DNA of 63,082 nucleotides, filler included, from Reticulomyxa filosa (Eukaryota; Protista; Foraminifera), in assembly GCA_000512085.1 (NCBI GenBank). It is 19 parts of 19 records of this genome, joined end to end, with 100 filler letters (N's around TTAATTAATTAA, not from the genome) between each part and the next. Parts side by side here need not be neighbours in the genome. Positions count along the whole stretch, not along the records: positions 27,080 to 30,541 come from ASPP01036886.1; 18 more parts are not named here. The stretch is one strand, 5' to 3'. Below, in pieces: positions 2,762 to 30,541 of the stretch. The position numbers and the translations under genes were made by a program. The notes beneath the pieces are model-generated. The model was not told the DNA's origin, did no database searches, and saw nothing but the letters and a program-made list of their open reading frames with translations. Position 1 is the first letter of the stretch. Each line of letters begins with the position of its first letter.

Positions 2762-5700
2762 CTACAAACCAGCCCAATCCCACCATCCTTGTTGTTTCTG
2801 ATCACCAATATTTCCGCGAGGATTGGCACGTTGTACTTGTCTCGTGAGCTGGGCACGTTGTATTGAGGATAGATGTTGAGGATGAATAGGCACAGCTTGG
2901 TAAGTGATCGGTGTATTTATATTGGCGTTCGTGAGAATGTGGTGGTTATTATTTGGAGAATTGTTGATTGGAATGGTAGTGGTTGTGTTGAGATTGTTGG
3001 AAGGGGAAATGATCGTATTAATAGGAGAATGGGAATGAGTATGCGTATGAGCATTGATATTGGAATTGATATTGGAATTGATATTGAGGTTGGTGTTCGT
3101 GTTGTGATATTCCAGCCCTAATCCAATTCCACTGAGATTAGTGGAATGAACGGGATTAGTGGTTGGTGACGGCGTGAGAGACATGCGTCCAATTTGTTGC
3201 ATTTTTCGTTGGCGATGTTTGTCAACAACAGCCTTGGCACTATTGTGTTTATCACATGGGTTTTGTTATTCACCGACGACGCCGTGTCTGTTATTGTGTT
3301 GGTCGTCGGTGTCAATATACTCGGTGTGCCAACAGGTGTCGACACCGACAGCGGAGATGTAATGGGAATATTCGTTGTGGGAAGTATGTTATTATAGTTT
3401 AAATTTGTGGAAGTGGATGTTATAGGCATCGTTTGTGGACTTGGAGCAGAAACAGTGTACAGCAATGTATTTATGTGTTCGGGTTGTTGTTGTTGTTGCA
3501 ACAAAGGCTGTGGTACTTGCGATGTGTTCACATATTGGCCTGGCGTTGATCCTTTAGTAGTGGATGAAAGGGGTCTCAACGTGCTTGGATTGGTTCCAAC
3601 GCGACGACTCTTTATTTTTATTTTTTGTTTATTCATTGTGTTTTAAAAAAACATAACATATATGTATATGTATATATATATATATATTATGTCTATGCAC
3701 TGAACATGGAAATCATTATTTAGACTATGAAGCGAATGACCACTTTGTACGCTGGTATGAGATCCCATGGAAAATCCACTAAAGTTACGGTCGTGAGATA
3801 TTGTAGTGGTGTCTTTTTCCTTATGTTCGTCTCGATCTTTATCTCTCTCAATTTCTCCAATGACTCCAGTGAACTGACTACTCCAATTATTTGTCGCGTT
3901 GCTCGACATACTGTTGCTATGGTTCTTGGAGGTCCCACTCCCGCCTGGCGTTGGATGGGTACCGATTCGTGGACTTGATGGCAGAGTTATACCATGAGAA
4001 ACCGCTATCTGTTCCAATTGTTTCAATCGCTTTCTCAATCGTTTTTCTTTTCGTTCTTGCGTCTTTGTGTTATCTAGCAAATCTTTCACTGACTCTTCCA
4101 ATTCCCGGTTCACATTTGTTACATTTGCAACATCTTTCATTACACGTTCGAGCATCCACGATTTCTTGTTCACCAAAATTCTCAAGTTACTGATTATTAT
4201 TATTATTATTATTATTATTAATTGTTTTTTTCGTCTCACTCAATTAAAAACATATTATATCAATGTGACCATTTATTTATTTTTTTTGAAATAAAATGGG
4301 AACAAACTGATTCCAATCCACCAACATATCAACGTATTCTTGCCAGACATTGGAAATTTTTTCTTCTTCGGCAACTGGTGGCGGTGGTGGAGTACTTTCT
4401 TCTGGCAACATGACCTGCGGCCAGGTTCGCTCTCCGGTGTTTGGATCAATGAAAGTATATTTTTTGGTCCATTTTTCGTCGTCCATGATATAAATGCGTT
4501 TAATGACTCGTCCATATGCGTCCACTTCGGCATTGTTGGGGATTATTTCTTTCTCGATTTCCTTGTCTTTCTTGAAATCACGGAGTTGATTTTCCGCTTT
4601 TTCAAGTGCTTCTTTCAACTGTGTATTTTCCTTTATTAGTTTTTCAATTGTCTTTTTCAATGATACACTGTCAGAAGGAATAACAATGGGATGCAAGTCC
4701 ACCACTTGGAGTTGTATCACTTTGCTGCCGTTCGGAGTCCAATTGTTACTACTGTGAGTGTGAGGCAAGCCATGGGGCTGTCCCGGACTTAAACTGGGGG
4801 TACGACTACGTGGCACCGCTATCTAATCATGATTTCATTTCAATGGTATTCTTTGTGAAATGAAGCAAACAAACGGTACAAAAAAAAAAGGGGTCGAAAA
4901 TACAAACTTTTTTCAATCGGGCAATCTCTCGAAGTATTTTTTTACAATGCATCGATTTCACGGCCAGTTCATTTTTCAACTCTTGTTCGGTGATATCCAG
5001 TAGTATCATTCCGTCGATGTATTGCTCAATAAACGACGTCATATACATTTTGCAATGGATTGAGATAAGCCAGTATCCTACCTCTTCACACGTCCAATTC
5101 CAGCAATTTTCCTTTTTTTTTTTTTTTTTTTTTTGCATAAAAATAGTTTGTTACAAAACAAATCAGAAAACAGGAGATCAGAGTAACTGGTTTTGCAAAT
5201 TCGCTATTATTTTCTTTTTGCTCCATCAGCGAAGTTATTAAATTGGACAATGCTGTGCTGCCAAACTCGGAATTTAACGGTCTTGACACTGACAAGGTCT
5301 CAAACTTGGACGATGTTCTGGGTTTGTCTACATTTACGTATGCGTATATATGTGTACGTATATATATTCATATATATATATATTGTATATGTATTATGTA
5401 TAAATTATTGAATAAGTACAAATATGTAATGCACACATACACAAACACAATATTCTTTTTTTTTTTTTTTTTTAGTTGTTTAAACCATTGATGTGTTTAC
5501 TTTCTCCATTTTCACTGCCATTGGACTCATTCTCGTGATCAGTGTCAAATTTACTTTTCATTCGTTGCTCTAATTCCTCTTGTATTTTTTTTCGCTCTTC
5601 ACTAAACTTGTGATCATATTCCGTCGATATTTGAATGCGTAATTTCGCCTCCAAACTTTCACGTAGTGTACTCTTGTTTTGTTTTTTTTTTTAAATGGCG

Positions 5701-27079: not shown

Positions 27080-28521
27080 ATGAAAATTTCACACAATTCA
27101 CAGAATCTGAATGTCCATCGAATGATTGAATTTGTTTGTTGTTATCAACATCCCATACACGAACTGTTTTATCAGATGATCCAGAACAAATCAATTGACA
27201 ATCATCAAGTGTTGAATAATCAATACTCCGCACCCAATTGGTATGTCCAGTGAATGTGTTGATTAATTTGGATGATGAACGAAACAAATCAAAATCGAAT
27301 TTGGATGGTGAATTTGACTCGTTTTGTAACAATTGATGAGTAGAATCATTTTCTTTTTTATCTTCGTCGATATGGTGAGTTTGATTATTTTTGAATTGTG
27401 TTTCTTTTTTTAATTGCCCAATTTCAGTAAGAATAGTGTCCTGATTGGTGTAATTTGTTATTTGTTTGCGTTATAAAATAGGAATAGCAAAAGAGAACGT
27501 ACCAGTTGTAGTTTTAATATTTGATTATCATTATTCATTTTTGAAATCTCTTCATTTTGTTTTTTTTCATTTATTTCTTTTTCTGATTTCAAATGTTTGA
27601 TTTCATCCTATGTTTGTTATTTATTTTAAATTGTCAATCCAAGAAATATTGCACATATTGACAATTTTTTTAAGAATAGAAAATATTTACATTGAGTTTC
27701 GTGCATGCATCACATGTACTTTGACATTGTTCAATTTGTTTTTTGAGTTGAGTAATATTCTGATTCATTTCCGATTTCACTTGTTGGATATCATTTGTCA
27801 ATTCAATTATTTGTGCATCTTTTTTCACAGATTCACGTTGTAAATCATCAATTTTTTCCTATTTATGTTTCAACAATTCAAGCATTAATGAATGGAAATC
27901 AAATAAATATTGAAATAAAACTTTATACATATTTGTGTTATATTTTTCCTTTATTTATAAATTGCAAATATTATAAAAATACAACAAAACTGTTTTCAGT
28001 TTTTCAATTTGCAATTGCAATTGCAACTCTTTAATCAATAAAATAATATGTTGAATTGAAATTAATTGACATTGTTTATCCAAATGATCTTTCATTTCCT
28101 TTATTTTTCCTTTATAATTGCATTGATTTTCTTGTTCTTCTTTTTCTCCTGATGTTATTCCCTCTTTTGGTTGTTTTTTTTTCATATCATATTGTCGAGG
28201 ACAGATTACCAATAAATCTGAAACTTGTTGTCTTGAAGATTTACTCTTCACAAATTCGCAATGATCGTGTTGTTCAATTGGACATTTTCCATCATTTTCT
28301 TTCAAATATCTTTGCAGACATTCCTCTCCAAATAAATACACTTGTTCTGCATTTTCATGTTCATCGCAATGCAATTCCACTGCGTTATTCGCAATTTGTT
28401 TGCAAATATAGCAGACTAACGGGTTTACTTTCTCTGGTTTGTTAGTCAACAAAGCCCAGTCTTTGTTATAACAACCAGAACTGGAAAATGTTTCTTCTTC
28501 ATCTCTTTCCAAGTCCAACAT
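27080..28521 (-). CDS. RING-like/TRAF-type zinc finger + coiled coil + WD40 protein (3' truncated)
   Basis: CYICKQIANNAVELHCDEH...GEECLQRYLKENDGKCPI (RING-like), VICPRQ...CNYKGKIKEMKDHLDKQC (TRAF/SIAH-type zinc finger), coiled-coil exons, then GHTNWVRSIDY...SGSSDKTVRVWD. Confidence 0.8.
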
Positions 28522-28899
28522 AATCCTTTTAGTTATTATGATAGAGTTTTTTTTTTTCTCCAAAAAAAAGTTTTGTTTAAAAAAAAGGGAGAACTTGAAA
28601 CTCTACTTACTTTATGAAGTGATTGTTTTTTTAAAAAATGTGATAATTTCAATGAAAAACAATGGAAAATTGAAAATAAAACTAAATAATCATTTCAAAA
28701 GAACAAGGATTGTACCTTATAGAATTATTGATATAAGTATTGCAGTTGCGACAAAGAGATACATTATTTAAGTTTATTATTATTAATTACATTTTTATTG
28801 CCATTGTTTCTTGCATTCTTTTTCCCAAGATATTTTGTGGATAAGAAGTAATTGACATCAAGTGTTTTTAAAATGTTGAAAGAATATGGAATTTGTGTA

Positions 28900-29100
28900 A
28901 CAAATTTAATCATTCCAAGAACATGAATGGACATCTGAATAAAACAGGTCAATTGTATTTTATGGAATTCAAAAGTATTGTTGTTTTCATCATACTTAAT
29001 TGATAAGTCTATATTTTCATGGAACTCCATCATCTCATTGATGTATCCTTTGATACAAAGCAATGAAAGTATACCCAACCATTAATAGATAATGTACCGT
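28900..29100 (-). pseudogene. Kelch-type propeller family relic
   Basis: LSIKYDENNNTFEFHKI resembles a motif I recall from an expanded foraminiferan Kelch-like family; the surrounding frame is broken. Confidence 0.4.
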
Positions 29101-29931
29101 GTTTCAAAAAAACATATTGGAAAGAGTTTAAAAAATTTTTATGTATTAAATCTATAAATAAAACTTTGCAATATACCTTGAAATACAAATAAATCCAAAA
29201 TTAGTTTCTTTTACATATTTTGGCTGACAAAGAAAAGTAGGAAACATTTTCTTTACTGAATTACATTTTAAAGGAAAAACGTTTCGAGATGCTGGTGATT
29301 ATCAAAAGTATAATAGAAAATTATCTATTTTATTTATTTTATTGTTTACCAAATTGCGACAAAATCATTACTAGTTTTTTTCTTGAACATTATGGACTAA
29401 TTGCATATTTGCAAAAAAAAAAAGTAATTTTGAAGAGAACTCTTTGCCATGAAAAAATTAAAAATCAATGAAAAAACATTGGGCAAAAAATGACTCTAAA
29501 TTCAATGATTTAGTCTGGAAATTAATAGTAAACTATTGATAGGGATTGCATTCTTGTGCATTCAAATTACCCATTTCCTAAATTTTGAGTAAAGAAGAAG
29601 AAATTAGAAATTATTTCAGTTCTCATTTTCTTTCATCAACTATACTCATATTCTCTTCATATAGTTTAGATGTTTGTAAATTGTTTGCAACGACAAAAAA
29701 AAGAACTCTTCCTACAGAAAAAAAATACATTGGTGTGTATGAATGTTAATACTCTACAAAATAAAACACATATTTCACACAAAGTTTATATTTATTTAAA
29801 TAAAAGAATTTTTATTGACCCTTCGTGATCCTAAAAAAAAGTTGAAAAGCATCTTTTTCATCATCTTTTCGTCTCAAAGATCATCTCAAAGATCATCTCA
29901 AAGAAGAAAAAAGAGAGATTTTAGCTTAGTA

Positions 29932-30541
29932 ATGAAAGTTTCGTTTAAGTTCTTTAGGTTTTTGTTATTATTGTTTTTCTCATTTTTGCTTTATGATTGA
30001 AACAGTCAAAAGAAGAAGAGATCCAAATCATTATTCATCATTGGATTCGAACATTCAACATTAAATTAGGATGGATCAAAGATTTTGATAAATTTGTTGT
30101 CAATTATGTTAGTTCATTTATTCTTTCTTTTCTTAAATGCCAATCAAAACATTACAATATTATTTAACATAGGTGTCTACTGTCTTCATGTTTGAAACAT
30201 TTTGTTCATCATCCAAATTAATCAACACATTCACTGGACATACAGACATTATATGTAGTATTGATTATTCAACATTTGATGATTGTCAATTGATTTGTTC
30301 TGGATCATCTGATAAAACAGTTCGTGTATGGGATGTTGATAACAACAAACAAATTCAATCATTTGATGGACATTCATATGGTGTGTGTTGTGTGAAATTT
30401 TCATCATATCATTATCATAATAATCGTCAACATGTCATTTGTTCTTCATCAGATGACAAAATCATTCGTTTTTGGGATTTCAAACATAATCAACAATTAC
30501 AAATATTCAATGGACACAATGATAGTGTTTGTGGCATTGAG
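29932..30541 (+). CDS. WD40-repeat protein (short helical N-terminus type), 3' truncated
   Basis: Exon SKEEEIQIIIHHWIRTFNIKLGWIKDFDKFVVNY, an intron, then three GH...WD repeats; 184/201 nt identical to 27080-27280. Confidence 0.88.

Follow-up and report, generated by a model that had tools for sequence, protein, structure and literature searches.

A constant scaffold that carries hypervariable contact residues under selection is a hallmark of recognition systems, among them antibodies, lamprey VLRs, plant and animal NLRs and the fungal HNWD proteins. In the HNWD/NWD family of Podospora anserina (het-e, het-d, het-r), each WD40 repeat has four hypervariable codons on its interaction face, for which positive diversifying selection was found, and is homogenised elsewhere; they form two pairs, 7 and 9 around the purified codon 8, and 25 and 27 around codon 26, which is also purified (Paoletti et al., 2007; PMC1805685). 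For the repetitive WD40 domains of prokaryotic STAND NTPases, a conserved scaffold with diverse hotspot sites has been described (Hu et al., 2017; PMC5587647). Here we have analyzed a WD40 locus of the foraminifer Reticulomyxa filosa. The window is a stretch of 63,082 nucleotides that joins 19 parts of the assembly GCA_000512085.1, and the locus is the contig piece at positions 27,080-30,541 (ASPP01036886.1, hereafter the piece), which contains two genes transcribed divergently and separated by about 1.4 kb. We consider it probable that these genes are two members of a family of at least 430 proteins with a fixed number of seven blades, a homogenised scaffold and a selected top face, which together would make up a recognition repertoire.

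The two genes share an inverted repeat. Once the reverse complement is taken, positions 27280-27080 of the minus strand and 30204-30404 of the plus strand can be aligned over 201 nt without any gap, and exactly 17 positions differ, the same count as in an earlier reading of this protist DNA made from the sequence alone (the sequence-only reading), and an independent repeat search recovered the same pair of arms. That reading had also placed fifteen of the differences in two windows that follow GH dipeptides, and this is what we find: ten are located after the first GH (offsets 40-52, TNWVR vs TDIIC) and five after the second (offsets 173-183, SDSVN vs SYGVC). The remaining two are a L/F change at offset 71 and a silent TTC/TTT replacement at offset 160. 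Taking as a priori windows the 30 nt that correspond to the five codons following each of the two GH dipeptides, the chance of finding at least 15 of the 17 differences inside them is 1.1e-12. Within these windows the proportions of synonymous (pS) and non-synonymous (pN) differences between the arms were 0.43 and 0.52, and several codons differed by two or three bases. In the other 56 codons the values were 0.029 and 0.007, so the near invariance noticed before, even at silent sites, is confirmed. Actually, the pS of 0.43 within the patches is the value typical of the whole family. The similarity starts abruptly at SSSKL (27280 and 30204), the sequences upstream being unrelated. Both arms are recognized as WD40 by Pfam (PF00400), with E values of 1.5e-14 for the minus gene and 4.1e-19 for the plus gene, and the profile matches of both genes carry the GH and WD dipeptides. 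Besides, the 12 nt that code for NWVR in the minus copy are identical to those of a paralogue on another contig, L004(-), whose flank is different. The minus copy shares its flanks and its B-C turn with the plus copy, and the nucleotides of its blade-1 patch with L004(-).

The amplification that had been proposed for this family is large. A word search with the WD40 exon of the plus-strand gene retrieved 141 proteins at E<=1e-10, every listed one from R. filosa. When a 205-aa member was used, at least 430 proteins were found at E<=1e-20, and all of the 120 matches listed (120/120) belonged to R. filosa. Among the family matches listed there are about 40 complete propellers of roughly 355 aa. 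The complete members examined had all seven blades, each of them with a conserved scaffold of its own, and one blade is about 71-75% identical to another in DNA. One full-length propeller (P0121), to residues 1-118 of which the propeller exon of the plus gene is 77% identical, was modelled by AF2 with 40 paralogues as the alignment. The model had a pLDDT of 90.2, a pTM of 0.88 and 28 or more strands, and a Foldseek search with it gave TM values of 0.7-0.9 to the seven-bladed WD40 structures of PkwA, WDR5, RACK1 and LIS1. The predicted fold of the family is a closed seven-bladed propeller; the copies in the piece are themselves cut after blades 2 and 3.

The best sequence match in the PDB was the highly repetitive propeller of Nostoc punctiforme 2YMU (E 1.9e-78). 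A search against representative proteins was dominated by long multi-repeat bacterial WD40 proteins with identities of about 35-45%. Scores summed over many repeats swamp this kind of search, which makes it weak evidence on relatives in other taxa. Ten of its matches were looked up, and the four with the highest identity (44-64%), including those with 47% or more, were all from R. filosa. In the searches made, proteins assignable to the family were found only in R. filosa. Full-text literature searches for Reticulomyxa with WD40, WD-repeat or NACHT, which did not take in the genome paper (Glockner et al., 2014), brought up no description of the family.

In order to locate the variation, we calculated entropies for 85, 51 and 34 copies of blades 1, 2 and 3, and separately for 40 complete propellers, numbering positions from the H of GH and from the D of the B-C turn. 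In blades 1-3, the values were 2.5-3.5 bits at H+2, H+3, H+5 and D-1, about 2 at D+1 and mostly between 0 and 1 elsewhere. The same four positions stood out in all six GH blades of the complete propellers, with 2.5-3.6 bits over a median of 0.85. In the model of P0121, strand A begins after H+2 and H+3 and has H+5 as its second residue, and D-1 and D+1 are located in the B-C turn. The top-face hotspots of WD40 domains, known as R1-2, R1 and D-1, were defined from 36 crystal structures together with mutagenesis (PMC3419727), and H+3, H+5 and D-1 correspond to them. On this mapping the variable residues (the D-A loop, the start of strand A and the B-C turn) are those that form the ligand-binding top face of the modelled propeller, where the sequence-only reading had put them.

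The number of different top faces is high. Among 147 members that cover blades 1 and 2, there were 127 distinct five-residue patches in blade 1 and 132 in blade 2, and the signature of the two blades combined was unique in 145 of them. Members that have a blade-1 patch in common are as different in the scaffold as any other (identity 0.71 vs an average of 0.70), and their blade-2 patch was also the same in one of 24 cases. The core top face is made of 20% Tyr, 11% Asn, 9.5% Ser, 8% Trp and 0.8% Lys, a composition that is not what AT bias would give.

For the analysis of selection, we used a DNA set of 19 copies, from eleven contigs and the piece, and defined a priori 18 core top-face codons and 317 others. 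No stop codon was found in any of the 19 copies. By pairwise Nei-Gojobori counts, the core codons had a dN of 1.03 and a dS of 0.38, giving an omega of 2.7 (codon bootstrap 1.55-4.9), and the remaining 317 codons had a dN of 0.17 and a dS of 0.43, giving an omega of 0.39. The ratio between the dN of the core and the dS of the rest was 2.4 (1.75-3.3), and in 16 of the 18 core codons pN exceeded the pS of the family. A dN/dS above 1 at these codons throughout the family was what the sequence-only reading implied, and over these copies the counts agree with it.

The scaffold shows a very different behaviour. The nucleotide divergence of the hypervariable codons is about 50% when the scaffolds differ by 3%, the same as when they differ by 20-40%. 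When paralogues are compared, the scaffold part of the propeller exon is far more similar in DNA than the intron and N-terminal exon next to it, reaching identities of 93-95% in pairs whose adjacent introns are at the level of shuffled sequence (for the piece copy, W, 0.69 against 0.61 when compared with L006, and 0.54 against 0.51 with L004). The similarities of scaffold and intron are poorly correlated (r 0.25); for example, W is nearest to L005 by intron and motif exon and nearest to L006 by scaffold. The excess of scaffold similarity over that of the introns and these discordances point to a homogenisation restricted to the exon. It appears to act between paralogous genes at the same blade, and not between the repeats of one gene. 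We favour a recent conversion of the scaffold between paralogues, by which the patches would have been retained or exchanged separately. At the level of the family, the comparison of copies supports an evolutionary reading in which the genes were amplified, their scaffold homogenised and their top face submitted to diversifying selection. A diversity-generating retroelement-like mutagenesis was also considered and rejected: the changes affect all bases, and nothing resembling a template of the patches came out of a repeat search of the piece, which was not dedicated to such elements and did not include reverse transcriptases.

Several points weigh against this reading and open the way to other explanations. 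The dN/dS values are pairwise counts near saturation, obtained from only 19 non-independent copies, and the top face does not have the monopoly of variation, since other loops, in blades 6 and 7, vary too. Both facts could be accommodated if the top face were just the least constrained surface of a redundant and partly decaying family, and so could the presence of at least one frameshifted copy (L002). However, relaxed constraint does not account for a ratio of 2.4 between the core dN and the silent rate elsewhere, with an interval that excludes 1, nor for a scaffold under purifying selection (omega 0.39, no stop in 19 copies). A face with much Tyr, Trp, Asn and Ser and hardly any Lys is also far from what AT-biased neutral drift would leave. 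We consider this explanation very improbable.

A PHI-type test of recombination on scaffold sites was not significant in any of four data sets (p 0.24-0.84). The incompatibility is high at all distances, and this leaves the test with little power here. The case for conversion rests then on the contrast between introns and exons and on the mosaic patterns, tract structure not being demonstrated. The concerted evolution claimed by the sequence-only reading may hold: the scaffold and intron contrast, the discordances and the mosaic of the pair in the piece speak for it, and the PHI-type test against it. The same null result, together with the family-wide omega above 1 at the top-face codons, is what could be expected if the two copies of the piece were recent duplicates, submitted to strong positive selection on point mutations only, with neither conversion nor exchange of patches. 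But such selection in place would not predict the high silent divergence within the patches (pS 0.43 vs 0.029 outside), nor the codons that differ at two or three bases, nor a blade-1 patch in the minus copy identical in nucleotides to that of L004(-) next to a different flank. The decoupling of scaffold identity from that of the intron and N-terminal exon is also against it, and we find it distinctly unlikely as a substitute for conversion with separately evolving patches.

The assembly itself is highly fragmented (50,809 contigs, N50 3.6 kb, according to a table quoted in PMC13746701), and many family members stop at contig edges. Both arms of the repeat are located at contig ends, the left one being cut at the edge. 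It could be argued that the arms are a collapsed or chimeric consensus of paralogues, and that the mosaic of scaffold and patches in this pair is not a real haplotype. Nevertheless, the same pattern appears in 147 separate predicted proteins and in complete, stop-free, single-exon propellers found inside contigs of 11-14 kb, and chimerism would be unable to create the diversity of patches. Besides, the two patches of one copy are about 130 nt apart, a distance that we estimate a single read should span. We regard an artefact of this kind as very unlikely. One last adverse point concerns the N-terminal side of the minus-strand gene, described below: the RING/TRAF assignment of the piece's own N-terminal exon is weak (zf-RING_2, E 0.03), and the AF2 model of this TRAF-like exon is unusable (pLDDT 54).

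The coordinates of the features are given in Table 1. The gene models of the piece were searched exon by exon, each exon separately. The piece is AT-rich (GC 0.21-0.34), and no match to tRNA or Rfam families was found within 27,080-30,541. We presume that the spacer between the genes contains the shared promoter region of both. The same head-to-head layout recurs once in L004 and twice in another contig, L008.

Table 1. Features of the piece, in positions of the whole window
Feature	Position	Strand	Basis
Inverted repeat, left arm (blade 1 and first part of blade 2), truncated at the piece edge	27080..27280	-	201-nt alignment, Pfam WD40
Inverted repeat, right arm (blade 1 and first part of blade 2)	30204..30404	+	201-nt alignment, Pfam WD40
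Hypervariable patch, blade 1, minus gene (H+1 to H+5, TNWVR)	27228..27242	-	Arm alignment, frame
Hypervariable patch, blade 2, minus gene (SDSVN)	27096..27110	-	Arm alignment, frame
Hypervariable patch, blade 1, plus gene (TDIIC)	30242..30256	+	Arm alignment; family entropy 2.6-3.4 bits at H+2, H+3, H+5
Hypervariable patch, blade 2, plus gene (SYGVC)	30374..30388	+	Arm alignment, frame, family entropy
Hypervariable patch, blade 3, plus gene (NDSVC)	30518..30532	+	Position from frame; family blade 3 entropy
B-C turn, blade 1 (D-1, D, D+1 = S D K)	30308..30316	+	Family-hypervariable; identical in both piece copies
Motif exon, 34 residues, family-specific (core IQxIIxHWIR...GW)	30006..30107	+	Frame; paralogue exon alignment
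Phase-0 intron, 65 nt, GT..AG	30108..30172	+	Between motif exon and propeller exon
Propeller exon, blades 1-2 and start of blade 3, cut by the piece edge	30173..30541	+	Frame, Pfam
Minus-gene exon 1, Cys/His-rich TRAF-like domain (RING-like and TRAF-type zinc finger pattern)	27991..28521	-	Open frame, GT donor
Minus-gene exon 2, coiled-coil-like segment	27691..27858	-	Introns (132 and 83 nt) keep the frame; aligned with paralogues
Minus-gene exon 3, coiled-coil-like segment	27503..27607	-	P0095 and P0234 have the same segment ahead of WD40
Minus-gene exon 4, linker, WD40 blade 1 and start of blade 2, cut by the piece edge	27080..27440	-	62-nt GT..AG intron upstream; Pfam
AT-rich spacer between the divergent genes, about 1.4 kb	28522..29931	.	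GC 0.23-0.27; no tRNA/Rfam match

In the plus-strand gene, the propeller exon is preceded by a short motif exon and an intron, and homologous ones were found ahead of the propeller exon in all 12 loci aligned (12/12). The 34-residue motif had no match in Pfam; a LisH or F-box identity was considered and rejected, as it had no Pfam support. At L003, L005-L011 and in the piece (29931-30187), the motif exon and its phase-0 intron stand ahead of each propeller exon that was examined, also in genes whose public models begin at an internal Met (MF[DE]TF...). Many public gene models of this WD40 family therefore look truncated at the 5' end. Further upstream, what may be the first exon of the plus gene (29932-30005, beginning with an ATG) has a 4-nt gap relative to the paralogue L005, and no in-frame GT donor that would join it to the motif exon was found. 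The 5' end of the plus gene may be damaged.

The minus-strand gene has a different architecture, with four exons in frame and canonical GT..AG introns of 132, 83 and 62 nt. Its exon 1 has 40 paralogues in R. filosa, several of which are named in UniProt as 'TRAF-type domain-containing protein', and the Cys and His residues of a CxxC...CxxH pattern are conserved across the aligned copies. Pfam zf-TRAF (PF02176) matched three of 21 exon 1 paralogues, with a best E of 7.7e-7, the copy of the piece being without match. The zf-RING_2 profile stays below the Pfam cut-off both in the piece copy, with the E value given above (0.03), and in five of the 21 paralogues. A sequence search of the PDB with this N-terminal exon gave no match. 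Exons 2-4 follow with what looks like a coiled coil, called without a dedicated predictor, and then a C-terminal WD40 (not MATH) domain; the AF2 model of the TRAF-like side (pLDDT 54, see above) shows a long helix.

The same layout, a TRAF-like/coiled-coil/WD40 gene opposite to a motif/WD40 gene, is found in L004 (ASPP01014930.1, 1-3029), the coiled-coil and intergenic DNA of which could not be aligned to the piece by blastn. In P0234, on an 8317-bp contig shared with P0128, the TRAF-like domain and coiled coil are followed by the N-terminal motif, an arrangement indicating that a single protein can have both types of N-terminal module before its propeller.

Other contigs illustrate how the family is arranged. 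The 13.9-kb contig L008 (ASPP01013894.1, 1-12300) contains five family propellers, two head-to-head pairs among them, and so the family is at least partly clustered. A gene in the same contig joins a 391-aa N-terminal region to a WD40 of FSPDG type. Blade 4 has an Asn-rich insert (P0121 169-187; L008:5273-6325) that is predicted to be disordered (pLDDT below 50); its length varies, and one copy has about 16 Asn in a row. L002 contains propeller remnants spread over several frames, with a degenerate blade 1 (3467-4230(-) and the 1195 region(-)), and at least some copies of the family, like these, are pseudogenes or fragments. An open frame of 1851 aa at 3767-9322 of L001 codes for a NACHT domain (Pfam E 1.6e-9) and, after it, for some 15 WD40 repeats, each 42 aa long. 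These repeats, with a mean identity of 36%, are of a WD40 type that differs from the family studied here, and this NLR-like STAND protein adjoins a family member on the same contig.

The mechanism that we propose would work as follows. The scaffold would stay homogeneous through gene conversion confined to the propeller exon, while selection for diversity, or the exchange of short patches, would keep the specificity patches different. The pair found in the piece would be an extreme case, in which the flanks were homogenised lately and the patches kept the divergence typical of the family. The products would make up a repertoire, encoded in the germline, of binding modules that act in the cytosol and cover many specificities, and the TRAF-like zinc-finger/coiled-coil module or the short helical motif might couple these binders to oligomerisation, signalling or ubiquitin-ligase partners. 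We infer that their role is most likely the recognition of variable ligands, for example non-self, prey or parasite proteins.

The same evolution could also have produced diversified adaptors for endogenous ligands, for example ubiquitin-ligase substrate receptors, or adaptors for cargo and motors in reticulopodial transport, instead of sensors of non-self. TRAF7 and COP1, which act as E3 ligase or adaptor, have RING, zinc finger or coiled coil followed by WD40, and the layout of the minus gene resembles them. LIS1 is among the nearest folds, and R. filosa is reported to have amplified its families of cytoskeletal motors. Against this, hundreds of unique top faces with an omega above 1 are what one usually finds at interfaces of antagonism or allorecognition, and not in adaptors with housekeeping roles, and we regard the endogenous alternative as unlikely when compared with the recognition of variable ligands.

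Going further with recognition of variable ligands, Foraminifera could have an undescribed germline recognition system, made of several hundred cytosolic WD40 binders on one fixed scaffold of seven blades, which conversion within the propeller exon would keep uniform, with a selected top face reshuffled by patches, that would serve as a repertoire for immunity or prey recognition independent of NLRs. We put this forward as a tentative proposal, possible but doubtful at present. In such a system each binder would expose roughly 25-30 top-face residues, rich in Tyr, Trp, Asn and Ser like the paratopes of antibodies, the reshuffling would proceed in patches of four to five codons, and part of the family would be wired to the TRAF-like zinc-finger and coiled-coil modules. 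A WD40 version of the principle in a rhizarian would bring it to a supergroup with almost no known genetics of immunity or allorecognition. The family also provides a natural library of more than 100 top-face variants on one stable propeller, for the study and engineering of the binding specificity of WD40 domains.

It remains to place the family among the systems already described. The order of domains of the minus gene, with a Cys/His-rich RING-like/TRAF-type region (its RING match below threshold), a coiled coil and a C-terminal seven-bladed WD40, is the one found in TRAF7 and COP1. Unlike the foraminiferal genes, those are single conserved genes without hypervariable faces, and the likeness seen is one of domain order. 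Large paralogous families with an E3-like N-terminal module that oligomerises, and with surface loops of the recognition domain under diversifying selection, are known in TRIM5alpha and the fish finTRIM proteins, which are made of RING, B-box, coiled coil and B30.2. They provide a working analogy only, as their recognition fold is B30.2/SPRY, not WD40, and the lineage is unrelated. In the prokaryotic STAND WD40 proteins (e.g. 2YMU) the repeats are alike within one protein, whereas the foraminiferal blades are alike from gene to gene, blade by blade; besides, the bacterial multi-repeat proteins are only about 35-45% identical to the family.

The HNWD proteins of Podospora offer a detailed parallel. 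In both, the hypervariable positions come in pairs around a conserved residue, H+3 and H+5 around V and D-1 and D+1 around D in the foraminifer, matching codons 7/9 and 25/27, and in both these pairs are located on the top face with a dN/dS above 1. The pattern that the sequence-only reading borrowed from the fungus holds in this respect, with the same four codons per blade, and fails in another, as the foraminiferal blades (71-75% in DNA) are not near-identical repeats. The propeller is fixed here at seven blades with scaffolds of their own, while the repeats of HNWD are interchangeable, near-identical and variable in number. The diversity is distributed across hundreds of paralogues in one genome, and not over ten genes with allelic variation, and there is no repeat-induced point mutation (RIP) in the foraminiferal family. 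The N-terminus is also different, being either a short motif or a coiled coil preceded by a TRAF-like zinc finger. By Pfam, NACHT was absent from every exon of both genes of the piece and from the family N-termini examined, and the HET cell-death domain had no match in the genes of the piece. These two genes do not belong to the NLRs, and with neither NACHT, nor HET, nor interchangeable repeats, the family is not one of HNWD NLRs. As far as the sequences tell, the likeness to HNWD is one of mechanism and not of membership. If this is true, the foraminifer would have reached its own design, without NACHT and with hundreds of separate genes in place of shuffled repeats, and the same four codons of each WD40 blade would have been put to use independently in fungi and in a foraminifer.

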